DNA of 64,000 nucleotides from Hamiltosporidium tvaerminnensis FI-OER-3-3. Lineage: Eukaryota > Fungi > Microsporidia. The position numbers and the translations under genes were made by a program. Positions within the stretch are counted from its first letter, which is position 1. Every line of letters starts with the position of its first letter. The notes beneath the pieces are model-generated. The model saw only the letters and a list, made by a program, of their open reading frames with translations, searched no databases and had not been told where the DNA came from. The stretch covers positions 612,573 to 676,572 of the forward strand of contig CM061256.1 in assembly GCA_022605425.2 (NCBI GenBank). Direction: 5' to 3'. Positions 16,710 to 63,224 of this stretch are shown here, one piece after another.

Positions 16710-17240
16710 AAAACTAAACCCTTTAATTACCTTAATGTTAACTAAAACCCTTTAATTACCTATAATGTTAACTAAACCCTTTAATTACCTTAATGTTAAC
16801 TAAAACCCTTTAATTACCTATAATGTTAACTAAACCCTTTAACTACCTATAGTCTTAACTAAAACCCTTTAATTACTAATACTGTTAACTAAACCCCTTT
16901 AATTACTAATGCTGTTAACTGAACCCCTTTAATTACTAATACTGTTAACTAAACCCCTTTAATTACTAATGCTGTTAACTGAACCCCTTTAATTACTAAT
17001 ACTGTTAACTAAACCCCTTTAATTAATTATAGTGTTAACTAAAACCCTTTAATTACCTAACCTATTCTCAACTTCTTTAATTACCTACCACTATTCTTAA
17101 CACCCTTTTAATTACTTATAATGTTAACTAAAACCCTTTATTTAACTACCATCATTAGCAACACCCCTTTATTCATCTTACTTTATACTAAGATCCCTTT
17201 ATACCATCCTCTTTATACTAACACCCCTTTATTCATCTTA
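16710..17240. repeat. ~30-bp minisatellite (taactaaacccctttaattactaatactgt-like) between convergent genes
   Basis: More than 12 tandem degenerate units, related to the reverse complement of the AGGGTGTTAA repeat in the Hsp110-like CDS. Confidence 0.85.
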
Positions 17241-38399: not shown

Positions 38400-39760
38400 T
38401 AAATTCGTTTTATTCTGAGCTGACTTATCTGATTCAGGGTAAAAAAACTACAAAGAGACTATGACTACAAGATTATAACTTTCATGATAAAAAAATGTGC
38501 AGCAAAAGCAGTAGAGTTCGAATAAAGAAGCGATGGCTATATGCAAATAATCCATTAACCGCTTTAAAAAGAGTGCAGAAAGCAAACAAGCAGGGTTTTC
38601 CAATGTCGTTCTCAATAATCAGTTTGGCAATAACTCGAGGGTCACGTGTAGCAATAAGAATAAGAATACACTTACTATTCAATATATATTGTTTATTCGA
38701 GCGATTCATGCAAACCCCAAATTCTCCAATAGTGATCTCGAAAAATTTTAGAGACAATAAATCAAAATAAAAAGTTGATATTTCAAAAGACCTGCAATTC
38801 AATATAATCAGATTGAAAGACAACATCCCAAAGAAAGCTTGTCATAATTTGTGCAATGTATAAATATTTAAGGTAAAAACCGAACAAGTATTAGACTAGA
38901 GCCAAAATACATAATGATGCAGTATCTCACGCCATTAGAATATCTATTGGTTCTTAATAATTTCGCTCTCTATTGTCAGCATGTAAACGTTAATATTATG
39001 ATTTATAACGTGAAATGGGCTTAAAGTTAATGATTTAGAGAAAACAAAGCTATTATGTCAAATTAGTTACCTTTGCCTGATATAATATGCTCTAAAATAC
39101 TTCGGCATTTATAGATATTAGAAAAACCATAACAATACTAGAGGTAATTAGAAAAGTAGTTCATTCGAAGAGATAAAGCAGATAAATCTATTTGCCAAAA
39201 ATCTTTATCCTATTAGATAAAATGAAAAATTTTCACTCGCCATAAATCAACATTAGAAATTGTTTCACACCTATTCAAAATAGTATTTTGAATAAGACCA
39301 GCTGGCTTCTCAAATTAGATAATGTAGTGCCTGAAGTGTTTTCAAAAAATAAGAACCTCTAGACAATAAATAAAACCCGATTATAAATCCCAAAAAACTA
39401 TGATCTAGTATAAATAAATCTAAGTCCTAAACTAAAATATGCCCCATATCTCTTGAATTTTTGTATAAAAAGAATTATTAGTCTAAGATAAGCGATTTCA
39501 TAAACTTAGAATAACGATAAACCCATTTTTCACAAATTAAAGCTTCTAAAAAGTATAATATAGTTAAGAAGAAAAGTACACTAAGAAAAATCCAGAGAAA
39601 CATAACTTGCAAAATTATATAACGAAATAGAAAAAAAGTCAAGCAATGTTATTAAAGGCAACTAATCCCAAGCTAAAAGTGTTAGTGATCAGCCACAAGG
39701 CTAAAAAGAAGAATATTAGGCAAAATGATACAGGAGTGTTTGCTATATCCAGGATATTTT
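38400..39760 (+). mobile_element. Highly degenerate relic of the R4-like element (RT to pre-knuckle region)
   Basis: Colinear DNA similarity to ~3630-5025 (e.g. tgactaca, gtgcag..agc..agcagg, aacttgcaaaattatataacgaaatagaaaa, gctatatccaggata). Confidence 0.7.
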
Positions 39761-39769
39761 TATCTAATA

Positions 39770-40045
39770 AAATTCGGATTAAAACTTCTTTATGACTGTT
39801 ATAAATTCCCCTCTACCTCTTTAACCACCAAAGTTCCGTATTTTGAATCTGACACGTTTATAATTATCTTCGATTCCTCTAATAAGGTTCTTCCTTCTGA
39901 AATAAATTGTTGAATCTTTTTGTTTTTCATTGTACAACACAATATTGATCGTTAATTCCGGTTTTAGAAGTTTTATTAGTTCCACGTGCATTTAGACTCT
40001 ATCAAAAATACCAATTGACGCACCTTTCAGCTCTCTACGGCATTT
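39770..40045 (-). mobile_element. Inverted 3'-terminal relic of the R4-like element
   Basis: Reverse complement matches 5640-5900 (gccgtagagagctg..gcgtcaattggt..). Confidence 0.6.
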
Positions 40046-43000
40046 TGTTCCATTGAATTTAGGTATAAAATTTTCAAAAAAGATTATTGAAAAGGTGAAA
40101 AAAGCAAAAATTATATCCGCAAAATAATTTATTTATGTTTTTATAATAAGTAATATTAAGTTATTCATTTCCAAAAACTAGATCGTAATAAATATATTAT
40201 ATATGCCTTATATAAGCTTAAATCAGTTGTATCAAAGAAAAATTGCCGAAACTATATATGTATTATGTTTAAAATAACAAAATTGATTTTACATGAAAGA
40301 AACAGAGAAAAAAAACAGAGTATTATAACAAAAAGATTACAAATATCTTAAATAAATGCCAATTAATGTCTATTTTATACATACAAGAACAGATTTCAAT
40401 CATCTTGAAATTAATATATTCCAAATAAAATTTCTTAGCTAATGATTATGTTCTTTTATACTACAGCATTCTTAAGAACTTCAGTAGCAATTAGAAATTA
40501 TATTCAATATACTAAAATTTAATTTAAATTTATTTCTTTCGATTAATTACCCTTTTTTTTTTAATTTGTTTACTATTTTATTAGATTTTGATTCTATATA
40601 TCTTTTAAAATAAATATCAAGCAATTATAATAAAATGAGCTTTTTTTATAACAAATTATAATTTTTACTGTACTTTAAGGCAAAAATTCTCTAATTTCTT
40701 CTGTTTAGCAAAGAGTCCTAAAGAGAAGTTCTTTAAATAAATCTAGACTAATTGCAAGAAAATTGAAATTTAACATAAATTTACAAACACTATAAGCTGC
40801 TAAAGATTACCATTACTAAATATCCGAGTTTTAATGAAGATATTTAAAATCAAAAAAGCCTAAAGTATCTCTAAAGCTTTTTCAGACAACGTATAACAAT
40901 CTTTTTGTTTCCTAAAAAAAATATATTTTTTAAAAAGGTAGAAATGTGCTAATAAATTGTACTAAGATGATTCAAAAATATTTAAACACTGCTTTCTATA
41001 ACCTAACCTCATAATTTTTATTCGAAACTAGCTACAACGTTATTATTGTAAAATATGTAAAAATCGACCATAATTGATTTTAATCAATTCTTTGTCTACA
41101 CAAATAAAAAAGAAATTTATTTCTCAACAAAAATTTAATTTAATATATAATTAATATTTTTATTGAAAAACACACGAAACCCATATTTAAAATATCTTCA
41201 GTATAAAAATATTTCGATCTTAATTTTTTTTCAATTTAGAGCCATTTTTTTCCCTATAATTTAAAACACGATAACATGTCAATTTCTCCTCCCAACATAT
41301 TTCATAAAAATAAAAAAACTAAAAGACCAATAAAAAGCTAGTTCAAATAAATATTTTTATTTGAGAAAAATGTATTTAGATGAGAAACCAAAGTAATATA
41401 CTCTGCTACCACCAACTTGTATAAATATATCACGTAGTCTGAAAAAAAAATATTGTTTAAAAGTTCGTATATGAATGAATCGAACTTGACACCATCATTC
41501 AAAATTTATAGAATATTAAAACAGAATATCAAGCTTTACACATTCAATCACAACTCGAGCACCAGAAAAAACATTCACACACCTTTAAATCACCGTCAAA
41601 GATTAATAAACCACTGTTTGATTCGCTAATCGCAAGCAGCCTTGTTGCGCTATCGTGTTTTATAAAAAAATTCTTCTTATTACCGAAATAAAACTATCGA
41701 TTTGTCGTTTTAGTTTGTACTTTGTATGTTGGTAGTCAGTAAAACCAATATATATTTGACCGATCTTCTCATTGAGATTTCTGTCAATAAGTTATTTGAA
41801 TTATTGTTGTAAAAGACAAATGGTGGTTTGTAACTCATTTTTTTAGATTAGCCCTTTAAATCTTTTAATATGGCTATAATTTCTTTTGATTTAACCTGAT
41901 TGTTTTTAATCCCAAACATAACATTATCTAAATAGAATATAACCCTAGAAAAGCACATGAAACTTATAGTTATTCAAAAAAGCATAAGGCTTTAGCAATA
42001 AACCGAATCGAAAGCTTAAATTATATGATAAGAAGTCAAGATATATATCAAATAAAAAACTTTTAAACCCAATCTACATTATATAATAAATTACATAAAG
42101 ATGTTCTGTGTATAGCTTCTTGTAGTATACATGCTCTAAGTATGAGTTTTATCCAAAAATTATAGTTGCTCCATATTAGAGCCAATTACCGTAAAGCGTT
42201 TGTAAAAAAGTACATTAATCTGGTGAGGTTAACTCAAAATTTTCCAAGAGCATCAATATCTTATTCTGAATGATTCAAAATTATACATGATTCAATGAAT
42301 TTTATCCATTTCGCTTCGAGCCATTTCATAACAAAGCAAATGGTCTTATATGTAATTTTATAAAACAAATCAGTCAAATTAGCTCCAATATAGTAAACAC
42401 AATGCAAATATTTGTGCTAATCTTTTATGAGAAAAAATGGCATTGATTCCATTGTTTTTTCGATCAGGTGGTACCTTTCAACATGAAGAGAGCTATTTTA
42501 AGTGCATTTCAAGACATATCTGATAGTATTTTGTTAACATTTCCGTAGAGTAAAACCACACATATATATACCTTTTTTAATCTTGTCTGGCTTTCTTTTA
42601 AGTACATATAAAATATGTAAATGAGCCTAATATTATTAAAAATTATAATTAATCTACTACTCGTCAACCATAATATTAAATTTCAATTGTATTACGTGAA
42701 TGATCTCTACCATTCCGCCTTTGATTTTGCTAATTCAGTAGTTCATTAAAATATTTCGATATTTAAAGTTTTTAATACACGTTAAGCTATGCATCCCAGT
42801 TGCTTTCTAGCTCTCATTCTTTACAAGCCTACATTCACATTCTATTGCTAAACCTGAATTTATAAATACCTAGTCCTCAAAAAAAATATTAAGTACAAAA
42901 AACAATGCTAATATTTCCTATAATATATTTTAAAGATTTGTCTTATATTATACAAAATAAGCGTGCCTAACCGCATAGAAATATTTTCCAATCAATCTAT

Positions 43001-43320
43001 ACCCAAATTATAGAAAATTTAATTTGAAAAATTGCATATGCGTATAAAATCTATAGTTGCAGAACTTTTAATGGATTTATATTTAGCTAAGCGCTCAGTT
43101 TAAAAACAAATTACAATAAATTGTAAAATCTATGTAGACATAAGTGTATACAATAAGTATTTTAGTGAAAAAGACGATCACATTTATCTAAATAGAAATT
43201 ACCTTATAAGAAACATAAACACCATTTGAGTATTCTGTACAGTTTTGGAAATAGCTATGAAACCAACTGAAAGCCATTTGATTTTAGAGATAAAGACTCA
43301 AGATAAGGTAAAGGGTTAGG

Positions 43321-46300
43321 AAGAAAGAATTTTATTTGTATAGTTCTAAAATTAAATAATCAGTTGAGATTTTTGGTATGAAAACAAAACCTAATTTAAG
43401 CAAATCAGGTAAATTAGTTTAAACAAAAATTTCTCAAATGATTAATAATTTCACATCTACCACTCACTAGAATACGAAACATCACTATTACACCGCCTCT
43501 TACAATATTTTTTGCATTCTTGGTGTTATTAATAGTACAAGCAAATTTAAAATACATTTCTTGTAAAAATAAGCACCCCCTCTCCTAATATTCATTTGCT
43601 CATTCGGGTAAATTAATTTAAAATATTTTTTTTCATCTGTAAAATTATATAAATAAGGCAGTAACGTCCCAGTGGGCTCCCCGCCTCGCCATTAGTGATA
43701 CGTTAGTAAATAGTTAGACCAATTTAATATTTTTGTGTTTTATTGTGTTTGGCCTGTGTTTGATCTTTGAAAGTCTGTTAAAATGATGTCAAGATTATCT
43801 TTTTCATGTATTGGACTGATAATTTCAAGAATGATTGAAAAACTGTTTTGTGTTTGTGCATTAAAATTGTAATTTTTGAGGATTTCATAATCCGAAAATA
43901 AGTTCTAGTTAATTTTTAAGTTTTTCTTTTTAAGTTTTTCATATCTTTTTTTGAAATTATCAGCTGTGAATTTTTGAATATTTTCCTAAGATTGTGTTTT
44001 AAATTCTTGATATTCTTTGTGTTATCTAAGTTCAAAAGTTTCTTGACAATTGTGTGTTTTAAGTTTTTAAACTTTGGGGCAATAGAAAATCTAGGTCTAT
44101 TTGATCGTCGAGTCCAATTTTCTATAGGGAATAGAGCATAGATAATTTTGGACGGTGTTTTAAAGAAGATTCTGAAGAGGTATTTGATAATTCCTTTTTG
44201 AATTCTATCAGCGGCCCCAAGGAAAGTTTTTTACAACCAAAATTCCTGTATGATAATCCAAATGAGGTCTTACATATGATTTAAATGCTCTCAACTTAAA
44301 CTTGTATTTGTTTTCTGAATTGAAATATCTTGTGAGCTTCATATTTTTGTTTATAATAGCAGTTGCTCTTATCGTTTTTTCTCTAATAATTTTAAGAGTT
44401 TTCCTAGTATCCACACATCTGTTATTAAAGTAAAATCCCAAATACTTTAAAGGATTTTGTCTTGTTATTTGTGGTTATATATAGAAATATTTATCTCTTT
44501 GCCAGAATTATAGTAGGATTTGTGTGGATTGAATACATAATTGTTGTGTTTGGCATGTTTACATCACACTTTATCATTTTTCTTACATGATTAATACTCT
44601 CAGAAAATAAAACAATATCATCTGCATATAGAAGAATATTTTTTCTCATAATTTTTTGTATAAAATGTATGATATCGTTAATGAAAATATTGAATAAACT
44701 CGGTGAAAGTATGCTTCCTTGAGGTAAACCAAGGGAAGCTGTTTTAATTTGACTTCTTTCTTTAGAGTTAGAGATCATATATTGGTTGTTTTCTATTGAT
44801 CCGGAATTAGAGTTGTGTCTTTTAGGGATAAGTTTTGATTTGACAACATTTTATGATACAATTCGGATCGATTAACGCTATCATAAGCTTTTATGAAGTC
44901 CAGTGTTACACATATAAGAGATCCATTTCCATGTCTTAATTCTGTTTCCAGAACCATAGCGTTATTGAGAGTAGAATATCCTGGTTTTAAACCAGATTGT
45001 TGTTTGTGAATTTTGAGATTTATTTGTGATAAAATTAATTCTTCAAATAATTTTCTGGTTTTTTCGATTGAAAAATTAGGTCTAAAATCATCAGTATCTT
45101 TAGGAATAGGAATTATTTTGTGAATTTTTCAAGAATCTGGTATCGTTTGTTCAATTATTATAAAATTATAAAGATTGTCAATTCTTGTGTAAAATTTAAA
45201 GGTAAAATTTTAGAAATTCATTTCTGATTCCAGAAATTCCACCAGATTTTCCCGTTTTTAAAGTTGCAATCTTTCCTATTACTTCGTTAGTTGTAAACCC
45301 GTTGATCTTATCTTCCAAATTAAAGTTTCTGTTGTTTTGTCGCTTGTTGTAAAAGTCAGTTATGTTTTCGACAGTTTTATCTGGGTTTATCAAGGGTCCG
45401 TCAAGTATAAATTTATTAATTAATTCATTCAAATTTGGGTTAATTTTTGATATTGGCAAACCATGGAACTTAATTACCTTCATAAACTCAGATGTATTTA
45501 ACCCGATATGATTTGGTTCTGAATTCGGAACATCTTTTTTATCAAATCTTTTCTTTAAAATTTTGATATCTTTTCCTAATTCATTGTGTAAATCTACGTT
45601 AGTGTGTCTAGCTTCTTAACATCATACCCTTAAGCTCTGGATTATAGGGGGAATTGCTTCAGCTCTACATGTTCTTATCTCAATTCTTTTCATAGTATAG
45701 CTTATAATATTGTGTAAAAATTTACAACATTTATTAATGCATATGTAATCTATGATAAAATATTTTTTTTTCTATATGGTTATGTATCTGTTTTGTAAGT
45801 GTATCTACTAAATCTTTATTTTTTAGTAGATTTAATTTGTATTTCGGCTTCTTAGTTTCACACAGTGCAATAGTATCAACAAGAGTTAGTTTATCGTTAA
45901 ATTCTTAGAGAAATTCATTTTAATTAAAATAAAGTAATTTGTAAATACTTTATCAGCTGTTGAAGATTTTGTGTTATGACAAACGTTGTAAAATTTAAGT
46001 TAATTTCATAAAGTCCGTATTACAGGTGATTATCAAGAATTTCTTGTTCAAGCGCCGGTTTTTGTTCTAAGTTGTAGTCTCCCATAATTAGTGTGTTTAG
46101 ATATTTGTAATTTATCAGATTTTGTTGTAGAATTTCAACTTTATTTGAAGAATTATTCCTTAGCTAAAGATAAATAAATTATATATGTGTTTTATTGTTA
46201 TTCCACTTTCCGTTATGTTGTCAATTTTTGTTAGGGTTAGATTTTTCGTAATCAGTATGATGGTTCCTTTTTTACGAGAGAATATGTAATCTACTCTTAT

Positions 46301-47513
46301 AGAAAGTTTAACAGCAGCGATTGCATACTTTTTTGAAATAGGTGTAAAAGTATCTCTCCACGTCTCAACCAAAGCAAGAATATCAAAGGTGTTTTTATCA
46401 AGAATTTCGTTAATCTTTTTAATTTTCAGATCAGATAGGCCGCCCACATGTAATGAAGCCTCTTTTCTTTACCATAATAATAAGAATGTGAGAGGAATCC
46501 CGGTATCTAGTCTTTACTAAACTTGTTGGTCTCAGGTTTAGAATTTCTCAGGATATCGAGCAGTATGGATTCCTTAGTAGTTATGTTTACTGCAGAATTT
46601 TTACATTTTATGTCAATGTTTTGTTCCTCTTTAAATCTTAAATCAGTTTTTGAGGTTGTTTTTTCATTATTTAATTTACCTTTTTGGTGTAATTTTCGTA
46701 AATTTATGAATTGTTTTGTTGAAAATTTTAAGATTAATTTTCTTGTTACATCTTTTATCTTTCTTATTAATATTTCAATAAATGTTTCCGCGTTTATGAA
46801 GTTCAGATTGTTGATGTAATTTTTGTGAGAATTTGATTTGTAAGAAATTGTCAATTTACCTTTTTTTTTATAAATTTGTTAAAATTTTTAAAAAATAGTT
46901 TCTATTAAATAAAGGTGTTTTGTCGGATTCGTAGGTAAAAGTTTTTTCATTTATGATTATGAAATTCCTCAAATATTTGTGTTTATGTTTAGGTCTCGTG
47001 CCTTTTTTGTGATCTAGTTCAGATTTTATGAATCTTTCGTTATTGACGTTCATGGCTGATGTTATGTTATTAACATGTTTGTGTGTTTTCTTCAATTTTT
47101 TGTTTTCAGATTTTGAAAATTTATATTTTCCAAATTTTTTGTGTTGGTTAGACAAAATATCTTCGGTGTCAATCACTGTTTTGTAATTAAAGTAATTAAT
47201 CTAATGTTTATGTGTTCCGAGGTTGTTAATTTTTGTTTTATCTCGGTTGGAGATAAAGTTAAAATTATTTTTTGTAATTTTTTCTGAATTTTCTGTCCAG
47301 GTAAGACATTTATGTTCTGATTTACTTTTTTTTGACTGAAATTATTTTGTCGAACAAATGTTGGTACGCATTCAAGACATTCTATATATCGTTGATTTCT
47401 TATTTTTGAATTATCCAAGAGTAAGTCTGATTGTATGTCTGTTGTTTTTGTTTTGTAATGTGTTCTTGTTCTAATGAAAAGTCAACCAAGTCTGAATAGG
47501 AAGAAATTGCCAT
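43321..47513 (-). mobile_element. Telomere-repeat-associated non-LTR retrotransposon A (full-length, ORF1 + APE-RT ORF2, pseudogenised)
   Basis: APE motifs DILALVETW and GDYN. RT motifs GKSGGISGIRNEFLK, LGLPQGSILSP, LLYADD, YVRPHLDY. 3' end abuts AGGGTTAGG (43312-43320). ORF1 ATG (47513) abuts GGGTTAGG (47514-47521). Many frameshifts and stops. Confidence 0.9.
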
Positions 47514-47521
47514 GGGTTAGG

Positions 47522-49815
47522 AAGAAAGAATTTTATTTATATAGTTTTAAAATTAATTTATCAGTTGGGATTTTAGGTATTAAAACAAAACCTAATTTAG
47601 GCAAATCTTTTTTTTTTTAAAAGGCACAAATTTATTTTAATATTTGAAGCACTAACTCCTCCTACTTTGTAATAATATATTCTTATTAAATTTCTCTTCA
47701 ATCAAATGAATAGTTTCTTCTGGAAACTTTCAATTATTGTATAATATTTCAGTCCAAAGTAACCTTCATTAAAAAACAAAAATTTTATCCAACGGTAGGC
47801 CTTTCCCTGTATATCACATGATATAAATAGGACATCTTCAATCTTCTTATAATTTGCAATAAATATCAAATCTTTTTCTGATATATTTATTTTCTCTAAC
47901 TCATTCTTTTTATTTTATATTCTTGTGAGGCACAAAATAATTCTGAAAAACTAATATTTTGAAAATAAATTCTAAGAATATGAATTTCTTTTAGATTCAA
48001 TAAATTACTAAATGCTTCTACATCTAAATTATCAATAAAAATTGCACACCTGTAAATCCTTTAGACTGCTTAGATCATAGTTTTGAAATAAAAACTTTAT
48101 GGAATCTATAACATATTCAGAATCCGAAATATCTTTATTCGTGGCTTTAAAATATAATTTCTATTATTTTCTGAAAGTTTTACGAAATCAATCATTTGAT
48201 TAATATTCCAAAGACGCAACTCTTTAATATAGAAAATTTGATCTACCGAACGGTTTAATTTTATAGTATTTGCTTTCTCAAAGTATATTTCTTGAAGACC
48301 CATCATAGGAGCAAATAATTATATTTATATATTTTTAAAGGTAATTAATCATCATGATATTTGATTAATGATTTTCCAGAAAAGGCAAATTGGATAAATT
48401 AATACAAACAAAAAATCATGATGATCATTTACTCTCATCCAACACTTTCTTAAAAATAACACTAATAAAAATTCACCCGCCTCTCATATAAATAGTTTCG
48501 CTCATCTGGGTTTTTATAATTGAAAATAACACCACCTCTACTATTTTCTTTTGCTTTTTTGGGATTTTAAGTATTAGAAAATTAGGCATTTTCGTACTCT
48601 GTATTAAAAATATCTAAATAAGGCGGTAATGTCCCATTCGGGCTCCTCGCCTTTGCGTTGGTGATAAGTTTTTGAACAGCTAGGCCAATTAACTGTTTTG
48701 TGTTTCAATGTGGGTTGCAGATATCATATCTTTGAAATTCGACGAGTATTTCGTCAAGATTATCTCTTTCATGATGTGGTCCGATAATTTCCAGGATTGT
48801 TGAAAAACTTTATTTTTATTGTGATTTAAAATTGTAAAATTTAAGTATTTCAAAGTCTGAAAATAGCTTTAAGTTAATTCTTAAATTTTCTTTTTTAAAT
48901 TTTTCACATTTTTTCTCGAGTTTATCGGCTTGAAATTGTCTATTTACTTTGTTGACAATTTTTTTAAAATGTTTGACATTTTTTGTGTTATCATTTTGAT
49001 ATAAGTGTTTGACAATTGAATTTTTGAGATTGCTGATTTTTGTTGCAATAGAGAATCTCAGTCTAGTGGATCTTTTAAACCAGTTTTCAATTGGGAAAAT
49101 GGCATACAATAATTTTGAAGGTGTTTTATAATAAATTCTGAATATATATTTTATAAGGTCTTTTTGAATTCTGTCTGCTGCCTCAATAAAAGTCTTGTTA
49201 CAACCTAAAAGTGAAGTGTGATAATCTAGGTGAGGTCTTAAATAGGCTTTGTAGGCTCTCAGTTTGAATTTATACTTGTTTTCAGAATTAAAATATTTTG
49301 TTAGTTTCATAGCCTTGTTAACTATGGCTGTTGCTTTGATTGTTTTTTCTCTAATTATTTTAAGTGTTTTTCATGTATCTACACATCTGTTATTAAAATG
49401 GAATCCCAAATATTTTAAAGGATTTTGTCTTTCAATTTGTGTGTTGTAGATTGATAGGTTAATTTCTTTGCCAGAATTGCAAAAACATTTTTTGGGATTC
49501 AAAATATAGTTGTTAAATTTCGCGTGTTTTGATACACATTTGATCATTTTTCGAATATAATCATATCTTTCAGAAAATATTACTATGTCATCAGCATATA
49601 GAAGTATGTTTTTTCTTATTTCTTCTGGAATAAAGTGAATGATATCGTTTATAAAGACGTTAAAAAGACTTGGTGAAAGTATGCTTCCCTGAGGAAGTCC
49701 CAAGGCTGCTGTTTTGATTTGGCTACATTCCTTAGAATTTGAAATCATATATTTGTTATTTTGAATTAGATTGGCAATAGGTGTTGTATCTTTGAGATAT
49801 AAGTTTTGATTTAAG
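47522..49815 (-). mobile_element. Element B: 5'-truncated copy of the A family (RT C-half plus 3'UTR), interrupted by a retrocopy
   Basis: GLPQGSILSP, LLYADD, LKYLG, YLRPHLDY. 3' terminus near-identical to A's. Truncated within RT and followed by AGGGTAGGGTTAGGGT (49816-49831). Confidence 0.9.
47607..48382 (-). pseudogene. Retroposed fragment of a host mRNA (LRR-like repeat gene family) inserted in element B's 3'UTR
   Basis: Poly(T)11 at the left end (poly(A) on the minus strand), 8-bp direct repeat AGGCAAAT at 47599-47606 and 48383-48390. B's 3'UTR resumes colinear with A after it. Minus-strand reading has LxEIyf / IKELRL / LKEIHI-type repeats. Confidence 0.7.
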
Positions 49816-49831
49816 AGGGTAGGGTTAGGGT

Positions 49832-51130
49832 GAAAAAGAAATGATTTATTTAAATACTTTTAGTAGATCAAAACAGATCTAAACACGTCACAACACAAAA
49901 ACAATTAACTTCTACGCTGATAATCTTGCCCCGCACATCACTAAAAACACCAACTACCTTCACGACTGATATTTTCGCCAGTTTCATTGATAATATCAAT
50001 GTCTCAAATCAATCACATGCATTTTTAATTGTTGTCTTAGCAATTAATTTGATAATCAAAGCAATTATTGGTTTCAAAAAGGGACCAATAATCGTAAAGT
50101 ATAATTTTGGATGGTTCTATACACTTCAATCTATTTTATAAAAGCATTACAAAGGCTACTACGTCCCCTAATGGGGCTCTGTGCCCAACCGTTTCTGCAA
50201 AATCGTATCTGCTAATGTCGACTGGCCAATGTCAACATACTTTTATGGTGGATTTTATTTTTTTGTCGTTCATAAGTTCTAAAATTTCTTCAAACTTTTT
50301 CTTTTTCTTTTCAAAGTTAACTACCTCTAATAGTTTACTTAATCTTTCTTTAGTTTCTGTATTCCAGTTAAAATTTTTTAGGTTTTTAAAATTGTTAAAT
50401 ATTTCTAAGTTCTGTTGTAAATTTTTCTTCTTAGGTTTAGTAATTGTAGCTGAAAATTTTATTGTTGTTCCTTGGACCATCTCTTCATTTATATGTTCAA
50501 AGTAAAGTTTCTTCATGGTTTTAAAGATTTTAGTATTGTTATTTAGGAAGTTCGTGTATAAATTTGTTCTTTTACCATTCAGAATCTTGTGAGTGTTAAT
50601 TAAGCTTAGTCGTCTACTTCTTTGCTTTTTTTTTCTATAGAGAAGATTCCGTAAATGATTTTACTCGGTGTTTTGTAATATATTCCAAAAAGATTTTTAA
50701 TAATTCCTTTTTGGATTCTGTCGCAATCTTCAGTGAAAGTTTTGTTTAGACCAAGAAGTGTAATAGGGTAATCTATATGTGGTCTTACATATGATATGTA
50801 GCCACGTAGCATGTATCTAAAAATGTCACCCGAGTTATTAAATATATTCTTTCTTACAGCACTTTTTAAAATCGCTGTAGCTTTTAGGGCATTTGTTCTA
50901 GCTATTTTAAGATTTTTCTTTGTATCTGCGCATTTCAAATTGAAATAATAGCCTAGGTATTTGATTGGCGATTGTTTAACTATTTCTATATTATTAACTC
51001 TAATTTCAATCGTAATATTTGTGTTATAAAAACATTTTTTCGCGTTTAACAGATAGCTATTGTATTTGGCGTGTCTTTCTATGTTAGCTATCATTTCATG
51101 GATTTCATCTATTCTGTTCGAAAATATCAA
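49832..51130 (-). mobile_element. Element C: 5'-truncated, diverged lineage of the same retroelement group
   Basis: IKYLGYYFN, YVRPHIDY, DRIQKGII. Truncated just after the YADD position. Bounded by telomeric remnants at 49816-49831 and 51130-51138. Carries the shared 3'UTR hairpin. Confidence 0.88.
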
Positions 51131-52378
51131 GGGTTAGGAAAAGGAAATTTTATTTAAATATTTTTAAGTTCTGAAAAATTTCAGAATTTACATACAGTTA
51201 ACACCCCCCTCCTGGTATGATACATGACACCCGTTACTACAGTTTCATCTAACCCTTATACTTCCACGAAGCCTCATATGGAATTCCTTGAGGTTCCAGA
51301 TTGTCTTGTTTCATGGGTATCTTCTCAACCTGATCTGCTTTATAATATTAACTGGTAAAAGTTTTTTAAATATGGCAGTAACGTCCCTTGCGGGCTCCCT
51401 GCCTTAACCTACCTGCTAAATAGTATCTTGTGGATTAATAAGGTCAATATTAACCCCGCTAAGTTGTGTGATCTTTATTATGCTGAATAAATTTTATTAA
51501 AATTTGAATTATATTTTCTCTTTTATAGTCTGGAGTAAGAATATCTAAAAAAGCTTTAAATCTTGTTGTTGGAATCCTTTTGAAATCTTGCTGCCTTAGA
51601 TTCTCGAAAGAGTTAAAGATTTGGAAGTTAAGACGCAAATTTTCTCTTTGCCACCTATTATATTTTGCTTTAAATTCATTTCCCTGAATCTTATTCTTGA
51701 TATACTTGCAATTTTTCTTTATATCTTTAATATTTTTGGATTTATTCGGTTTGAATATCCATCTTAACAGTGTTTTTCTTGTGTGTATGATCTTATAAGC
51801 AACATTGCTCCTGAGTCTATCTGCTCTTTGCTTTGTATTTTCCAAGGGAAATAATGCGTATAAGATCTTCGTTGGCGTTTTGAATAAATTTTATATAGAT
51901 ATTTTATTATGCCTTTTTGTATCCTATCAGTGCCTTCAACAAACGGTTCATTACAACCGAACAGCTGGGCATAATAATCTATATGGGGGCGTAATAATTT
52001 AGTATACATTCTTAATTTTGATTGATAATATTGCAGGTTATTATTACTATATTGTGTCTTTCTTAATAACTTATTTGTAATCACTGCCGCTCTAACGGCT
52101 TTTTGCCTTATGAATTTAAGGCTTTTCATGGTACCTGCACATTTATTGTTAAAATAATATCCTAAATATTCCAGAGGGACTTGTTTTTCCAACCTGGTAC
52201 GATCTACATAGAAATCGTGATCTGTTGAAGCATTGTAAAAACATTTCCTTGGGTTTAATTTATATCTGTTGGCTTCCGCGTGCGATTGACATTGATCTAT
52301 CATGTATTGCATTGTGCTATGCCGTAAGCTAAATAATGAAATGTCGTCTGCGTAAATAATTATGTATGGTACCAGGTG

Positions 52379-54205
52379 CTATGGCATTCTTATCACGATA
52401 TCATCAATAAACACATTAAATAAAATTGAAGATAAAATGCTTCCTTGGGGTAATCCAAGAGCAGCAGTTTTCCAATTATTATTTTCTATTAATGTGTTGA
52501 TCTTGTACTCGTTATTCTCGATCAGTGCAGCTATTAGAATTGTATCTTCTCTTGAAAACTTCTTCTTTATCATTAGTTTCTCGTACAACCTCTTACGATA
52601 TACACTGTCATAGGCTTTGGAGATATCTAAAGTTACACAGATTCCTTCTACATCGCCATGTCTTAATCTGGTGTCAAGTGTTAAGGCGTGGTTAAGGGTC
52701 GAATGCTTCAGTCTAAAACCAGCTTGTTGTCTTTTCAGCTTTACCTCAAATTTGCTAAAAATTAGTTTTTCGAATAGTTTACGTGTTTTCTCTATCAATG
52801 AAATAGGTCTAAACTCGCTATCATCTTTGTGTATTGGTTGTATCATGTGTTTCTTCCAAATCAAAGGAATCTCTTTATCCGTAATAATCTTGTTAAACAT
52901 GTATGTAAGCTCCACTATAAAGTTGCGCAGACAAATCTTAAGGAATTCATTCTTAATACCGCTAATCCCACCCGCTTTGCCACCTTTTAATATCTTTATA
53001 CATTTCTCTACCTCTTCAACACTTAGCTGGTTTATCTTATTTTTTCTCTGTATGGTGTGTTTGCTAAATAAACTATTGTGGATGTTTTTTATCCACTTAA
53101 TTGTTTCCTCTAAGCTTGTTATCTTCCGATCTAAAACAAAGTTATTAAGTAATTCTTTATTATAATTCTGTCTACTGTTTGGGATTGCGTTACCATGAAA
53201 ATTCATAATGGCTTCTAATTGTGATGCTTCCAAACCAATGTGTTCTACTTTGAGGTCACGAGTATCAGTATCCGGTAGGTTTTTGGTTAATCTCTTTACT
53301 TCTTTACATAACCTTTCAAACAAGATTGGATTATTGTGCCTTGCTCTTTCAAGTGCTCTCCTAATGTGCTGAATGACTGGATTGAAGTTCGTACGACTTT
53401 GTTTGCGTATTATGAGTCTATATACACCAGAAAGTATGATATTATGTAAAGCTGTGCAACAGTCATTGATGTTTAGAGTTCTTATAATATTCGAATTCTT
53501 CTTAATTAAAATCTCTATTTTATTTGTAATATTTGCTACTACTTTTGGTCTAGTCAAGAGTCTTATATTATACTTAGTTTTCTTTTTTTGTATTTCTATC
53601 GGTTTTAATATTAAGAGTTTGTGATTTAATCCCACAATTGGAGAAATCTTAATATCTACTATCGTGTTTGTAAAAATCTTATCAGGTTTTGATTCTTTAT
53701 TATTGTGTTTGTATGTATTTGTTAGAATGTCGATCTCTGACAATCCATACATTGCGTGGTTATCTAAAATTTGTTGTTCAAGTGTCTTGTGTTGTTCTGA
53801 GTTATATTCTCCTAAAATGTATAGTCTTTTGTACAGGTATTGGTTTAATGTAGGTTTTACGATGTTAAATTCTGTACTTTTTGGGGGTCTATATATAAAA
53901 ATAAAAATTTGGTCATTCACTTTTATTGAAATACCTTCATCTGTTATATTGTCAATTGCCTCACTAACAATCGTATCCCTACCCAATACTATTATACCTT
54001 CTTTGTTTGAGTATCGGTCTCTTACTTGGACAGATTTCTTACTGTTTAACACTTTATATCCTCTTAAGAGTGGCGTTATATTATCTCTCCATGTTTCAGC
54101 CACTCCGAGGATGTCCAACATATGTCCTTGAATTAAATTATTTATCTTAAAAATTCTATTATCAGATAATCCCCCAACATTGATATACCCTACTTTAAAA
54201 ATCAT
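52379..54205 (-). pseudogene. APE endonuclease plus RT N-half of element D ORF2
   Basis: 608-aa ORF, frameshifted just before YADD. Continues in 51764-52312 and 51459-51845. Confidence 0.9.
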
Positions 54206-54274
54206 AGAGTTTATTGTTCAAGCTCGAAGTGTAATCTATCTAAATATTATTGTCCTTGATATTGAGAATTTTTA

Positions 54275-55764
54275 TCATCTCGTGAGTTTGATGCCTTTAC
54301 TCTTGAGTATACGAACTGCTAGACTTCTTAGTTTGTCGTTCTTGTTGCCCTGTCTGTCTTTAATCTTCTTCATTCGTGTAAATAACTTGCTTATTTTAAA
54401 AAGACCATTACTATCTACTTCAGGCGAGTTAATCAAGTGTTTGGCTCCAAGCATTCTAAAAATTCTAATCACCTCCTTTTGCACAGACCCTTTGCATATC
54501 ACTTCTAACACAGTATTAGAGAGAAACTCCATGTTTACAACCAACTTACTAGCACCCGGTTGAATGTTCTCCAAAGCGAGCCGAAATAGTGATATTTTAT
54601 TAGAAGTTAAATTACAAAGTAAAGTAAAACGTGTCTAGCATATGTAAAAGGTGATTTACCTTGTGTTAAATGCGCAAGATGCTCAGCAGTTAGTTTAATT
54701 GGGCTGGACTTCTGCTTCATATATTCTTTCTTCTTTAGAATATTGTTTCTTACTGAGATGGCTACCTCAGATTTGTCACTTATAGTCTCCTTGATATCTG
54801 CTTGGTAATTTATTTTCTTTACTTGATCTTCTCCTATTTCACTATTTGTTGTTTCCAAACTTCGTTTCCTATAGGGTTTCTCAATTTTTTGAATGTGAGT
54901 CAAGCTTCAAGGTTTATCTTCAAGCCTTAATGAGATACTTTTCTGTTGCTTTGCCACGTCCGTACCACCTCTGAGCGTGTTCTGTTTCGGGACTGTACGT
55001 ATAAGAACTCTGACTCTGGGTCTTGATAGTATCTTACGTGTGGTTTTATTGCCGTTGCTAGTGAGCGTATTGTTGATGTGTGTAATCTGTGTTGTTTCAT
55101 AGAGTGTTGTGGTATCAGAATTCGTGTTCTTGTTATCAGTAGCATCAGTCATCTCATTTACCACGTTTGCATTATTATCTTTTGTTGAAGATGTATCTTC
55201 TGTTTCTATCCTATCGAAATCCTTACCTTTTTTCAAATGTGCGTTTTCAATAGCAGAGGGTAAAACATTTTTCCCTTCTCTTGATTTTTGAAAAATATTA
55301 TCTTGGGTGTTATTTGTATGACCAGAAAGAAAAGAAGAGGTATCAGCTTTAGGATTGATGATGGTATTTCTTTTTTGACATGTTGTTAAGTTTGTGCTGT
55401 GTAACGAGACTGTCTGTTCATGCGGCGTATCACCAAGGTCTCTACCCCGTACCCTTGGTTTAACAGCTTGAACGATCCGCGATACTTCCGTTGTGTTCAA
55501 TTCATTATTTCGTTTAGTTTGTTTCTTACTAGTACAACGAGTCTTGTTTGTAAATTCCGCACATAGATCTGAAGTTCTTGTAGATGTCTTATCTAGGTGC
55601 AAATTAGAGTTTCTAGCCATGTTCCAAAAGCCATTGCAAAGTAGTTGAACAGTTTCGTTTTCTGTATTTGTTCTGTCTCTTAGTGTATTTCTCTGTGCAA
55701 CTTTATTATGAGTTGGATCTTTTGTATTTTTATCAGAATGAGCTAAGGAATATTTTGTAGCCAT
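54275..55764 (-). pseudogene. ORF1 of element D (disordered Thr/Asn-rich N-terminus, folded alpha/beta C-terminal domain)
   Basis: ORFs 54907-55764 and 54607-54903 share a frame separated by one stop, then a frameshift to 54275-54574 (VLLYF...RLALE...VNMEFLSNTVLEVI). Confidence 0.7.
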
Positions 55765-55772
55765 GAGTTAAG

Positions 55773-55850
55773 ACAAGAAAATTTTATTTAAACATTTTAA
55801 AAATTCTGGAAATTTCTATACTACCTCAATTAAACCCCATCAAACAATTA
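55773..55850 (-). mobile_element. Element E: 3'-terminal relic of a D-like element; right boundary undetermined
   Basis: acaagaaaattttatttaaacattttaaaaattctggaaatttc matches D's terminus aaaaggaaattttatttaaatatttttaagttctgaaaaatttc. Confidence 0.65.
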
Positions 55851-58800
55851 GAAAACTTTAGAATATTAACCAGATCTTTTTGCACTATTGTTAATAACAC
55901 ACGCCTATAACACTGTATAGAGCTTAACATCTTTTGAATAACAACAACAGAATTAATACCCTTAACTACAAGTAGCACGATAACACAGATAGTGCTTGTC
56001 TTGTATATGACACACTCCTTTACTGTATCACTACAGTTAGCAGGACGAACTATTTGATCCGTATGGAAATTAGCGCACTATTTGCATAAGCCTTATTAGA
56101 TTATACAGAAGGGTTTTTAAAGATAGCTTATGAACAGAATTTCAAACTTAATATTTTTCAGTAAGAACTGTGGGATAAGTAAAATAAAGTTCAAATTGTT
56201 CATAAACATTTATACAATTTGCTTTACTGACTGACATAACGTGTTTAGCTTCAATGTTTTAATTCCTTTCGTGTATCGCTCAAATGAAAAGTTTTCATCT
56301 TAAATTACAATTTTTTTTTTCGCAATCAGGCTCATTAAATAAGATTGACATTAACACAGATTATGGCTGAATGGATTATATATTAGACTTTTAAAATTGA
56401 ATATAATCCCTTGTTTGAGCGAATCCGTATTTTTCACGAGATTAAACAATTTATTTATACTACTCTATGAATATTATCTAGAATTTTGCAAATAATCCTA
56501 TATTAGAATTTTCCGAAATCATATCACCTAACAACCTAAAGTTTGAAATAAATATTCAGCGAATATCATAAAAATAGATATATAGGTGGTATTTGATATA
56601 AGGCTTAAATGAAAATATAGGAAAACAGAGTTATAAAAGAGTATACAAAATACTACCCAATGACAGAAGAGCTTTAAGACATAGAAATATGAAATGTTTT
56701 TATAGAGGAGATGTTCGAGATTAAGAACGTACGCTAATTTATAGTTTTTAATATAATAAATATAAATTGGTAAAATCAAAGAAAAAAATAGCCCCTGTCA
56801 TCCTGATAATATAAATAAATATCTTACCCTTTTGAAATCATTGTATCTGGCATATGCTCTAATATAATAGACCACACAGATCTATTTTTAGCTTATAAAC
56901 AAACCTTCTCTATAAAAATACTTGGGAAAACTAAAACTACTCTAATCATTTCTTAATAAACTGACCAAATTTTTCTATATGTCTGTATAAATTTAGGTTG
57001 TATATGAAAATGTATATTATATACATTCCAAAAACAGGTGTAAGTACTGATTTTTAGTAGAAAGTATTTCTAAATCCCCTGTTGAAGATACCTATTTTAA
57101 TTCACAGTTAAACAGTATATACTTGCTTTGATCTGGAAAATACATCTATTCTAATTACAAAAAAAACCCTTGTATGATATTGAGTATAGTAAATAGAAAT
57201 ACGTTAACCAAGTACATACGAAGAACTTCTAATATTCACTGTGTTGAATAGAAAGCATACTTAATTTTATTATATAATTAGAAACGATACCGAAAAGTAT
57301 TAACGATATTTCTTTCAACCCTATCAATTCTAAAATTACTACGTTCTTAAAAAATACATAAGCCTAATTTTATAAAAAAGTGTTTTTGAATTACTAGTAG
57401 GCTCGATCGTCTGAAAAAAAAGTATGAAAAGTGTACAAACCACATAAAATCTTTTTAGATCAGTCTGGCGTTTTCTTTAAGATTAAAATCTATATAAAGT
57501 TAATAGTATTTTCTTAAATTAGAAAATACATACAAATTAAGTCAATTAAAAAATACTTTGTTTCTTTTTCGTTTTTTTAAAAAAAATATTAATCGCTAAA
57601 ACAATTTCTTTAAATTTTTTTCTACAATATTCTAACGATTAGAATTATCGATGTTTTTTTGCTATCTGTCTACACAAAATGCATAATATATTTTTAACCT
57701 CTGAACCTACATATTTATCAAATATAAGTGGCAAAGAAGGGAGAAATTTTACTTACTCAATCTAATGTTTTAAACAAGCTATTCTTAAATAAAAGTTTCA
57801 AACCTAGATCCAAGACAGGTTAAACTTATAATTTACTAGGTTTTCTTAGCATTTTCTTTTTCAAGTAAACTATAGGAGCATATAAAATAATCACCTTTTA
57901 ATATATTTCAAAAAAAAATTAGCCAATGATAAAACGAATTCTCTCAAAACACTTATATCTTTAAAGAAATCATAGAACTGACTGTTTTGATATATTCTCT
58001 AACTGAATAATAGACATAAAAAGTAATATTATATAAAACGAAAAATTTACTTCCTAATTGTGATTAAATAGCTAAAAACATGCACCTCCGAAGTTTAGAA
58101 TTAATCAACCATAATTTTAAGATAAACCCCCTAATCATAAACGTACTTTCAAATTTTTTATTTTTGTAAATTACTAAAAAATAAAAAAAAAATAACCTGA
58201 TGCATATTTCCTAAAAAACTATTAACATGAGTGTTGCTCAAAATTCGGTATTTTCATAACGAAAAAAAACAATTTGTCTTCATTTTAAATGTACTTTTTT
58301 ACGACTAAAAACTCTTCTGAAAATTTTCAATTTCTTAATTTGAATATAATTTGCGAAGGTAACACATAAATTCAGAATGAAATATGCTAAGGTGCTATAT
58401 CACTTTAGTAATTTGTTTGAAAAGTTAAATTTGTACGTTTAATAGATTCTTTCAAACAAATTTGAACTTAATATTTTCGGCTTGGCAATATTTTTTTTAA
58501 TTTAGAAAGTAATTATTATTCAAAGAAAGTCGTATATTTATCAAAAATCTTAATTTTCTCACAAAAAAAGCTAGAATTTTGCACATAGTAGGTAGAAGTA
58601 GAAAGAATAAGACAATTTATAGATATTATAAAGCCCTGGTATATATATTTATCATAAACGGATACATAAAAATAGTAGACAATTTTAAACATTGTAATAA
58701 AATTATAGAGGTAAAAATTTTAATAAATATAAATATACAATTACATTTAAATTTATACAGTACTAAACCAAACCACAGGAAGGTAAAAAATATATAACTG

Positions 58801-61199
58801 ACTAAAAAATTTGCAATGAATTGTAAAAAGTTATAGAATACTAAAACGGAACAAAATATTTTGAATTTGTCCAAAGAATTCCAGGGAATCTAACCCTAAC
58901 TTTATACGGTTTTTGAAAACGCAATTTTTCAAAAAAAGTATGTAGAAAAATTCACTTTTTAGTAAAATGTAGACAAAAATAAAACAATATAAACAATCGG
59001 AACTTTCATAGTTACAAATTTTCAAAAAAGTCATTATCAAATTTAAATTGTTTTTAATATTTAAATATTTTCAGATAGAATAAAGGTATTTTTATTCTCA
59101 AATATGTAATTGATCCAAACCCCTTCAGGGGTGGGTGATCACTCTAAGAGATAATCCGAATAAAATCAAATTTCAAGACCAGAACTAAAAACTGAAAGAA
59201 AAAGAAAAGTGATGCCCGTTTTTATTCTGACTAATACACCAATAAACTTTTTACTATTCGTTTTTTTACCCCAACCTACTTACTTCCCTCTATCACTATT
59301 TCTGAAAAATGTACCTTGAAAATGTATCTCTCATACCATAATACTATTCCAATTCATCACATTCTTTTCCCTGTATTATTTCAGACCAACTATTTTATAA
59401 ACATTACCTAGACTTCAGAATCTCTTTATCATGATTCATCTTTAAAGAAGGATTACCAAACATACTAAAAATAATTAACTAAACCAATTAAGTTAGAGTT
59501 TAAATTATTTTTTTGGTTTTGGCTAGCATGGAATGGCAAGTTTAATTAATTCCGTGACAATCCAATTCAAATTTACATATTAAATTTTTCTTCGTAACAA
59601 TTTTCTTTATTTTTTTCTTATTTTATATATTACTTTTCTTCCCAATTTAGAAGAGATTCTTATAAAACATTTTTTTGTTTATTTTATCTACTATATGTCA
59701 ATTCACGTTTTTAGAACATTTTTGGGGCTTACATTCCCTAACTTCACAAAAGGTAAATTATTACAAAAAGAAATTTAAATATATTATTAGATTAATATGA
59801 TTCTAAGAAGCCTTTTCAAATCTAAATTTGTGTATTTTCATAGTTATAGAATCTAAGAAAAAATATATTTTTGAAGAAGTAAATTTACTAGCAATATAAA
59901 TTTTGATATATAAAAACTTTAAGTGGAAAAATATTGGTTAGCAAAGATTAAAATACGGTTATTACTTGGATAAAAATTACAGGAAACTACTTTTTATAAA
60001 AAAACAAACATGGTTTCATACCGGTGGATAAGGAAAAATAGAAACTTAACTTTTGGATAAGAGAATCATTTTTTTTAAATAATTTCTATTTTTTTACCCC
60101 AATTTATTTTTCAATAAGAATAAAAAAGTTTGGGAGAAGAAAATAATGCAAGAAAAAAAAGATTGTAGTTAAAAACAAAAAAAATTATTGGAGAAAAAAA
60201 GTTAAGAATAAATCGTGAGAGTAAAATTAGAGTAGAGATGAGCATTGGGTTTTACATCTATTAAGAAAGTTTTAGTTAGGGAAAGAAAAATTGTAGCTAC
60301 GGAAAAAAGATTTTAGCTAGGGAACAGGTATACGAAGGAAGAAAATTAGGTATGTGAAAAGAGAATTAGTTGGTAATAGGGTTTAGGGAAAGTGAAATCA
60401 GGCCGGGGGAAAGGATTTCTAAGGAAAAAGTATTGTTTTTTAAAATTTAAAAAATACTAAGGAAAGTTAAAATTGGTAGAATAAGAATCTGTTAATTAGA
60501 AAAAAATTGTCAGAATGATAATATTTAGTTGAAATTAATAGAGTCGGGCATGTTATTAAAATTTGTTTTAAAGATACAAGTTTTAAAAAAAGAAAATAAT
60601 TTGAACAGAATAAATAAAAATTACTTTTGTAAAGAAGAATTGTCCTGAAGGGAAACAAGTTTATGGAAAAAAGAAAGTTAGGGCAAAAGAAATTAATTGC
60701 GGAAAAAATAAATTTAAAGATAAAATGATTTGGCCAGAAAAATGATGAAGTTATTTAAAATATATTTAAATATAAAGAAATTAGGGGGTGAGATTCTGTT
60801 ATGTAAAAAGAAATCAGGGTAAAAACAATTGGGATAGGGAAATAATAATAGGGTCGAAGAAAAACGTTTGGTTTTGGGGGATTAAAAAAAGGGAGGGAAA
60901 GCTTGTTAGGAGTGGTATGAAATTAATTAGTTGAGTGAAAAAAGTTTTTGCTATTTTTTAAAAAGAGTTTGGTTTTTAGAAGTATTTGATTCTGCATATG
61001 CTCAATAAAATATTGTTGAGCAACAGTTTAAAAATTCTGATTGCGGTTAATTGAAAAAGGTATGTCTAATTACAAATAAATTTCTTCTTTCATTAATATT
61101 CAGCTGCTTTTAATTTTTTTTTAATTTTTGTTTGAGGAATTCTTTTTTAAAACATAAATATATTTGGTTCCAAGGTATTAAGAGTAGTTTTCACTGGCA

Positions 61200-62900: not shown

Positions 62901-63224
62901 TCTGAATTTATTACTTGCATAAATTTAAATAAAAAAAAATTATAAAAATAGCTGTAAAATAAATTAATTTCAAACCATGTATTATCTAAAAAATCTATTG
63001 TTTAATACGTATAGAGATATATTTAAAATAATTGCTACATGAGTTCTGCTAAATTATTATTAATAATATAAAAAAACATAAAAATCTTTATTTGTTAAGC
63101 TGCATATCATTTGACCAAAGTTTTATTTTTAACAAATTCACTTAAACCAGAAAAGCTTTGTATAAGCGAATATGTATCCACGTAAATTTTTTATTCTTTA
63201 TTGTAAATTGTGTACATGAGAAAA

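Follow-up and report, generated by a model that had tools for sequence, protein, structure and literature searches.

A subtelomeric LINE family of the microsporidian Hamiltosporidium with ORF1 flush behind element 3'-end sequence: a candidate LTR-like terminal redundancy

Long interspersed nuclear elements (LINEs) normally keep their promoter inside the 5' untranslated region (5'UTR). At telomeric repeats, TRAS1 of Bombyx (R1 clade) is a LINE with an APE-type endonuclease whose sense strand lies on the C-rich strand, a likeness to the elements described here; TRAS elements, which sit inside long repeat tracts, possess CCHC knuckles and an RNase H besides a 5'UTR and a poly(A) tail. The stretch of DNA analysed in this work (the window, 64,000 nucleotides) forms one chromosome end of Hamiltosporidium tvaerminnensis FI-OER-3-3 (contig CM061256.1, positions 612,573 to 676,572) and carries four LINE copies, A to D, below its telomere. 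In A and D, as well as in two further lineages, the start codon of the first open reading frame (ORF1) directly follows a telomere-like motif, which closes a sequence resembling an element 3' end. We propose, with a probability of roughly 45%, that this sequence is a short terminal redundancy comparable to long terminal repeats (LTRs) which travels with the element, so that the 3' end, a poly(A) signal and probable promoter in one, would be rebuilt before ORF1 at integration.

An earlier inspection of the letters alone (the sequence-only reading) had likened the arrangement to the HeT-A 3'UTR promoter, and the analogy is apt. HeT-A and TAHRE also form head-to-tail arrays near chromosome ends with distal 5' ends, and their 3' end is placed as the promoter of the next copy, giving an LTR-like unit that runs from promoter to promoter (PMC5537684, PMC1636488), a likeness which here is one of sequence position. 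HeT-A, however, takes the place of telomerase, is devoid of a reverse transcriptase (RT) and possesses a genuine 5'UTR and a junction with poly(A). In the present elements the ATG follows without spacer, the junctions are free of poly(A), the APE-RT is autonomous and an ordinary TTAGGG telomere lies 7 kb distant. Neither the 3' oligo(A) junction nor the element-made chromosome end of the jockey-clade elements HeT-A, TART and TAHRE was found: the ends are T-rich and close with CCTA(ACCC), and the chromosome is closed by 129 TTAGGG units, 7.4 kb from D.

TART shares with our elements two ORFs, an APE-RT, repeats common to the 5' and 3' ends and a start near ORF1 (PMC1636488), the start being a prediction in our case, but its repeats are long and do not reach the terminus of the 3'UTR, whereas those described here are terminal, 50–94 bp long and end in the telomeric octamer CCTAACCC. 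Penelope-like elements carry a 5'-truncated upstream copy or a short direct repeat with a TATA-like motif before the ORF (PMC3846280), to which the cognate stubs before A and D correspond in structure only; they differ by a single ORF, a telomerase-like RT and a GIY-YIG endonuclease or none, against two ORFs with APE and a LINE RT here. MoTeR, FoTeR and Cnl1 form tandem arrays at TTAGGG-type telomeres with short telomeric runs at the junctions, leave internalised relics with 1.5 repeats at the 3' end and spread by recombination among chromosome ends (10.1101/845669, PMC12857005), in which they are similar to our elements; they have, however, one ORF with a C-terminal restriction-like endonuclease instead of an N-terminal APE. 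The CCHC knuckle, poly(A) tail and long-tract insertion of TRAS and SART, whose endonuclease cuts telomeric repeats sequence-specifically, were not seen, nor was the RNase H of TRAS, nor were the protease, RNase H and integrase of LTR retrotransposons found, RVT_1 and EEP-type domains being the only ones among the meaningful matches. As far as can be judged from sequence, the elements work like HeT-A, TART and Penelope pseudo-LTRs at a chromosome-end site like that of MoTeR, and fail the defining features of each family.

The array below the telomere and the start of ORF1

All four copies lie head-to-tail on the minus strand below the telomere, with 5' ends facing it. That the elements are subtelomeric and end in telomeric sequence supports the sequence-only reading. 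Read inwards from the telomere, whose TTAGGG motif is that known for H. tvaerminnensis (PMC10542269), the minus strand shows 7.4 kb of subtelomeric DNA followed by D, C, B, a host-gene fragment of ~700 bp, a 94-bp stub and A:

63225–64000, plus strand: canonical telomere, (TTAGGG)n, which closes the chromosome
55765–55838, minus strand: 3'-end stub of 50–74 bp before D, with unique DNA upstream
51131–55764, minus strand: element D, full-length but frameshifted, with the ATG at 55764, ORF2 from 54205 and the 3' end CCTAACCC at 51138–51131
49820–51130, minus strand: element C, cut within the RT at its 5' side and closed at the 3' end by 11 nt of telomeric sequence (49830–49820)
48306–49817, minus strand: element B, 5'-truncated in the RT, 94% identical to the intact copy L011
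47608–48306, minus strand: host-gene fragment between B and the A stub, namely the C-terminal ~220 codons, 5'-truncated and broken, of a multicopy family of host genes encoding ~775 aa
47514–47607, minus strand: 94-bp 3'-end stub before A, the presumptive promoter and 5' copy of the terminal direct repeat
47511–47513, minus strand: start codon of A ORF1, flush with CCTAACCC
43313–47513, minus strand: element A, full-length but decayed, with ORF1, an APE-RT ORF2 and a 3'UTR of ~430 bp (tblastn with D ORF2 and P0007)
43313–43406, minus strand: 3' terminus of A, the 3' copy of the repeat, ending in CCTAACCC(T) without poly(A) and followed by non-telomeric DNA

On the minus strand, CCTAACCC (47521–47514) directly abuts ATG GCA of A at 47513, and CTTAACTC abuts ATG GCT of D at 55764, which confirms both junctions quoted in the sequence-only reading as placing ORF1 flush against a telomeric remnant. 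Two lineages with intact ORFs from Hamiltosporidium magnivora show the same arrangement, family E (contig L002) with CCTAACCC-ATG GCT and the B family (L011) with CCTAAC-ATG GCT, and the D paralogue in L126 reads CTTAACCC-ATG. The common sequence before the ATG consists of AATAAA, a T-rich tract and C(C/T)TAAC(CC) with zero spacer, and in all four lineages (A, D, E and the B family) the motif is followed immediately by ATG-GC(A/T). Whether every full-length copy begins in this way had been put forward as a check in the sequence-only reading; the flush junction recurs in the four lineages, and the octamer itself varies, as seen in L011 and D. Since CCTAACCC occurs only once in 101,240 background positions (~1e-5) and C[CT]TAAC has a frequency of 3.9e-4, the flush junction is not due to chance. 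A longer ORF1 is not present upstream, also in agreement with that reading, because in-frame stops lie just before the ATG: in A, D and E the motif itself supplies an in-frame TAA one codon upstream, and the nearest in-frame stop of the B family lies 7 codons upstream.

The element junction mimics a microsporidian core promoter, as the sequence-only reading had noted. In E. cuniculi, 5'UTRs of <7 nt are preceded by a CCC-like motif and an AAATTT or A-rich signal (PMC2803860). Of the six host ORFs in the window, the two named in the sequence-only reading, 2055 (CCC-ATG) and 13828 (CCCTCCTAAC-ATG, with CCTAAC before the ATG and no element present), carry the C-rich motif, which was not found at the other four (11447, 18128, 23652 and 30167). 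The ORF at 13828–16470 (plus strand) encodes a repetitive host protein of 880 aa with 30- and 60-bp repeats and no Pfam match, is flanked by 37-bp and 30-bp tandem arrays (13564–13688 and 16712–17246) and has the same start context as the B-family junction. A sigma-70 promoter scan gave results at chance level and is irrelevant to a eukaryote.

At least seven element lineages (A–G) were distinguished across the two Hamiltosporidium species, with an ORF2 identity of ~50% between D, E, F and the B family, where compared. Element A is 71% identical in nucleotide sequence to the intact B-family copy L011; its ORF1 is broken by a stop after 37 codons, and this N-terminus is homologous to the intact B-family ORF1 (49% over 37 aa). 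ORF1 and ORF2 of D are each split, ORF2 being 99% identical to an H. tvaerminnensis protein, and contig L005 of the same species matches 11.6 kb of the window at 99.9%. Truncation is variable at the 5' end and the 3' end is fixed: B, C, E (in L003) and G are cut at different points and have the 3' motif in common. The start of family F in L001 was considered as a fifth junction and rejected, as subtelomeric DNA lies upstream and ORF1 is without its start.

D and the subtelomeric block distal to it are common to several chromosome ends (window 51131–63224; L009 1610–13732; L126; L006; L008); the homology of these blocks ends exactly at the 3' CCTAACCC of D, with four different sequences beyond, and chromosome ends may exchange sequence at the element ends. 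The three D copies that possess a 5' end were rejected as independent insertions and counted only once, because their flank (255 bp to 7.4 kb) is common at 93–95% identity, approximately that of the element, and because the copies diverge nearly neutrally (dN/dS, the ratio of nonsynonymous to synonymous substitution, ~0.6 in ORF2 by a method without transition correction and ~1.1 in ORF1).

Terminal stubs, element 3' ends and the explanations weighed

The A stub is composed of AATAAA (47537–47532), the T-rich tract and CCTAACCC (47521–47514), does not contain the 3'UTR hairpin described below and is identical in the H. magnivora orthologue L010. It is 91% identical (86/94) to the 3' end of A itself at 43313–43406, versus only 38/46 for the end of the neighbouring B, and the D stub best matches D-type 3' ends (42/50 and 59/74). 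The AT-rich tract, taken in the sequence-only reading for the tail of the upstream copy, is an element 3' end but not the neighbour's: both stubs best match their own 3' ends with no neighbour body, 700 bp of host-gene sequence separate the tract before A from B, and D has no element upstream. A profile of six 3'UTRs, which revealed no element body upstream of the D stub, covers only the terminal ~45–55 bp there, and the idea that a long remnant of a neighbour's 3'UTR forms the D upstream flank was rejected on this ground. In E (L002) and the B family (L011), the upstream sequence belongs to the own family.

The upstream piece is cognate in all four ATG-bearing copies (A, D, E and B family), whereas the four copies without an ATG all sit behind the end of another family (C behind D, B behind C, F behind D and E behind G). 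By Fisher's test this contrast has p=0.029, which becomes 0.067 if the two short-read tandems are left out; it is suggestive evidence, not strong evidence. CCTAACCC stands on both sides of A and of D and is possibly element-borne. The possibility that A with its stub interrupts one host gene, flanked by a 7-bp target duplication, an arrangement that would have shown CCTAACCC to belong to the element, was rejected, since intact paralogues end before the stub and show no match beyond A; the candidate 7-bp duplication differs in H. magnivora and was likewise discarded.

The host-gene fragment behind which the A stub lies has its native stop at 47654–47652, followed by AATAAA at 47636–47631, 12 nt, and a run of eleven A (A11, 47618–47608) flush with the stub, and because of this succession it is probably a retrocopied host mRNA; A/T runs of >=11 occur only twice in 50.6 kb of background. 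The intact paralogues P0266–P0280 map only to 47608–48306 and end there. They were retrieved with residues 1–127 of P0148, which span two pieces of the broken host gene joined by the depositor; this query was used for retrieval only, and each piece of the window was compared separately with the paralogues afterwards. The fragment is co-oriented with the elements, and one member of its family is named as a leucine-rich repeat protein. The element family appears to retrocopy host mRNA. On its other side the fragment is joined directly to the 3' end of window B, which reads CTCCTA with zero extra telomeric bases. The A stub behind a poly(A)-ended fragment that is itself joined repeat-free to B suggests a chimera of the template-switching or serial end-capture type.

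The terminal 3' motif of the Hamiltosporidium lineages consists of AATAAA, a T-rich tract and CCTA(ACCC) without poly(A), and the CCTA starts 15–16 nt after AATAA at nearly all element 3' ends, so that CCTA(A) looks element-encoded. In H. tvaerminnensis, the 3' ends of mRNAs follow A[A/U]UAAA at a mean distance of 20 nt (PMC10542269), and since this distance is close to the 15–16 nt between AATAA and CCTA, the end of the element RNA can be placed inside the motif. The RNA probably ends in CCUA(A), the later bases being derived from the primer, which may be the telomere, a telomerase cap or the first nucleotides of the next copy; the final CCC could come either from the telomere or from the RNA 5' end. 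Telomeric runs of 4–17 nt are found at most 3' junctions and are absent at window B and at G. That the telomere supplies the CCC, as the sequence-only reading had it, found no support in this form: the CCC is absent in the intact B family (L011) and decayed in window D, the host ORF at 13828 has the same context, and CCTA(A) appears to belong to the element. The motif fits a promoter and telomere donation is not needed, given that L011 is intact without CCC and that CCTAAC-ATG occurs at 13828 without an element. Two short 3'-end pieces were encountered elsewhere: a family G copy of ~245 bp (L003 200–445) consists of the 3'UTR only, with hairpin and terminal motif, and may be a SINE-like (short interspersed nuclear element) remnant or a very short truncation, and a family F 3'UTR (L001 5098–5580) contains internal 81-bp repeats and a stacked 3'-end duplicate of 160–190 bp that is absent in L006.

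According to the mechanism proposed here, the last 50–95 bp of the element would serve both as its 3' end and as its promoter. At the 3' end, AATAAA would act as the polyadenylation signal and the RNA would end in or near CCUA(A), which could pair with the telomeric G-strand end, or with a similar sequence at a nick or break, and prime reverse transcription. Before ORF1 the same sequence would be read as a microsporidian core promoter, with its AT-rich tract and C-rich motif, and transcription would begin a few nucleotides ahead of the ATG, as it does in E. cuniculi (PMC2803860). Since the RNA itself would be without a promoter, this would be restored at integration: on reaching the RNA 5' end, the RT would switch to the 3' end of an element RNA, usually of the same kind, via a short CCUAAC overlap, and depending on the length copied a stub (94 bp in A, 50–74 bp in D) or a whole tandem copy (E, B family) would result. 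The functional unit, stub-ORF1-ORF2-3' end, would be a miniature pseudo-LTR element. From the sequences and their positions we infer promoter activity, start sites, poly(A) sites, telomere priming and the template switch. Template jumping by the R2 RT has been documented in vitro (PMC8857657), and a template jump was proposed for the 5' repeats of TART (PMC1636488). A stricter form, in which the octamer CCTAACCC would be at once start region, RNA 3' end, telomere-pairing site and transfer overlap, with the promoter rebuilt at every full-length insertion, seems unlikely; it would amount to a retrovirus-like logic in eight bases, forced by the host's lack of 5'UTRs.

Several observations weigh against a redundancy that travels with the element. 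Only two stubs, those of A and D, are informative, and the D stub is just 84% identical to the D end, with scores of 53–58 that modestly exceed the 40–47 for other families. L002 and L011 are short-read contigs of one permuted unit each, with overlaps of 839 bp and 269 bp; they may represent tandems that were collapsed, artefacts of terminal repeats, or circles, for which Zorro3 offers a comparison (PMC3510499). The ORF1 of family F, which sits behind the non-cognate D, appears almost complete although its ATG is missing, and this weakens the contrast between cognate and non-cognate ends. The 17-nt telomeric run after E in L003, which ends like the window's own telomere base, and the 11-nt run between C and the truncated B point to telomerase capping followed by insertion; target-derived repeats thus do occur, and at some junctions short telomeric caps are the likely primers. 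The work on the R2 RT itself suggests that template jumping may be dispensable in vivo (PMC8857657). Finally, in a distant relative (L012, Logan SRR14329764, 31% aa identity), ORF1 stands in an ordinary AT-rich/CCC-AAAA-ATG context that no 3'-end copy precedes, which shows that not every member of the clade has the stub. As to the same two copies, F behind D (L006 2803–3040; L126 4874–5110) reads CCTAACC followed by G ACA CAC, with possibly only the first two bases of the ATG missing, and is a possible non-cognate full-length junction, and the 3' terminal motif of L012 is similar to that of the Hamiltosporidium elements (1190–1226 and 5200–5230 regions).

The alternative which survives best, although we consider it rather improbable, is a redundancy of the HeT-A type, in which transcription would start 50–94 nt upstream in the 3'UTR of the previous copy and the RNA would carry the stub as a 5' tag. 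This would account for the cognate stubs and for the exactness of the junctions with the ATG, with no need of a template switch; the HeT-A start sites lie in the upstream copy at -93, -62 and -31 (PMC1636488), near the 94 and 50–74 bp found here, both intact-ORF lineages at the junction (E and B family) appear as self-tandems, and 3'-end duplicates of 160–190 bp are stacked in L001. It would however place a poly(A) signal within the first 100 nt of the RNA and leave unexplained the zero spacer between motif and ATG kept in three to four lineages, and microsporidian 5'UTRs typically have few nucleotides (PMC2803860, for E. cuniculi only). If it were true, the absence of a 5'UTR would not apply to the RNA, the promoter would lie further upstream in a whole neighbouring 3'UTR, and the solitary A and D would be silent.

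A promoter supplied by the target, as the sequence-only reading proposed, with an RNA starting at the ATG and insertion at a telomeric repeat behind an existing copy, is in our view unlikely. It draws on the telomeric runs of 4–17 nt with the telomere-base-like junction in L003, on the mixed-family stacking in the window, L003, L006 and L126, on the near-full-length F behind D and on the conserved catalytic residues of the endonuclease, but it predicts full-length copies behind the end of any family, whereas the ATG-bearing copies are cognate in 4/4 cases. Here CCTAACCC would be a target duplication or telomerase cap, and the stubs would be ultra-short or eroded neighbours that arrived separately, a similarly doubtful assumption: 3'UTR-only copies such as G in L003 exist, yet a separate cognate insertion of 94 bp would be needed exactly at the ATG of A. 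The CCC missing from the intact B family and the lack of any copy seen inside a long telomeric tract also speak against it. Very unlikely is a mere by-product, i.e. a junction formed by microhomology of RNA end and telomere, with transcription by read-through or an internal promoter and a promoter likeness coincidental in an AT-rich genome: its role as a poly(A) signal fully accounts for the AT-rich tract (PMC10542269), 4/6 window host ORFs are without CCC and transcription overrun is common in microsporidia (PMC2803860), but the zero-distance ATG-GC(A/T) is invariant in four lineages with an ORF2 identity of only ~50% among those compared, and a downstream internal promoter would, for want of a 5'UTR, have to lie within ORF1.

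Proteins, hairpin and classification

ORF2 begins with an APE endonuclease in which the N, E, Y, GDxN, D and H catalytic motifs are conserved (alignment A2) and whose profile matches L1 endonuclease structures (E ~1e-6). It is followed by an RT (RVT_1, E=4e-36), with residues 5–772 of L1 ORF2p as the best PDB match (E=1e-41); alignment A2 and the domain search revealed no C-terminal cysteine knuckle, RHD, PD-(D/E)XK tail or RNase H in ORF2. ORF1 comprises 354–389 aa in intact copies and has a conserved C-terminal domain of predicted ferredoxin/RRM-like topology (predicted local distance difference test score, pLDDT, 81), for which Foldseek gave no match at E<=0.001 and Pfam no convincing family; a search for ORF1 homologues among targets of 0.55–1.75x the query length found none. 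Among the deposited models that served as queries or in alignments, P0007, P0008, P0121 and the ORF1 pieces of alignment A5 are not obtained by direct translation of their loci, P0007 following one continuous frame for 885/913 residues.

A hairpin of the GGCAG..CCC-loop-GGG..CUGCC type is present in the 3'UTR:

43656–43687, minus strand: 3'UTR hairpin of A
~51360–51405, 48610–48655 and 50150–50195, minus strand: 3'UTR hairpins elsewhere in the window, found also in L001, L002, L003 and L011

The same fold occurs in A, B, C, D, E, F and G, with 9 pairs of which 2 show compensatory changes, and has no Rfam match. It is likely the recognition signal of the RT.

In a quick tree without labelled clades, the Hamiltosporidium elements formed a separate group with Dictyocoela P0134 and unnamed proteins (Shimodaira-Hasegawa-like approximate likelihood ratio test, SH-aLRT, 95), and scans of metagenomes and prokaryote genomes yielded distant LINEs only, their best segments mostly 21–33% identical; the distant loci L013–L125 were left out of the analysis. 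The elements are an APE-type LINE family, apparently undescribed. One clade member, P0133, was deposited under Cetobacterium sp. and probably stems from a mis-binned eukaryotic contig.

Other sequences of the window and significance of the family

A different, broken non-LTR element with an RT lies at 3113–5889 (plus strand), with fragments at 12482–12811 and 39510–40048; by eye it has a C-terminal zinc knuckle and a restriction-like nuclease motif, and its C-terminal ORF is not significantly similar to the APE family. Dispersed inverted repeats of ~280–300 bp (8280–8555/20885–21155, 87%; 18838–19133/20594–20887, 76%) are possibly similar to MITEs (transposable elements of the miniature inverted-repeat kind). 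The host genes at 22354–23652 and 27555–30167, both on the minus strand, encode a protein kinase and an M1 aminopeptidase.

In the literature searched, outside which most subscription papers lie, no description of telomere-associated LINE arrays in microsporidia was found, and a long-read genome and Iso-Seq data of H. tvaerminnensis exist (PMC10542269). Microsporidian transcripts start near the ATG, which closes the 5'UTR promoter route, and reuse of the 3' end appears as a solution, in apparent convergence with HeT-A and Penelope. If the stub travels with the element, the selective reason for tandem stacking, which the sequence-only reading drew from a proposed restriction of expression to elements behind another copy, would be weakened. 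If the redundancy proposed here is true, the family would offer a natural test case for LTR-like terminal redundancy arising from non-LTR elements.

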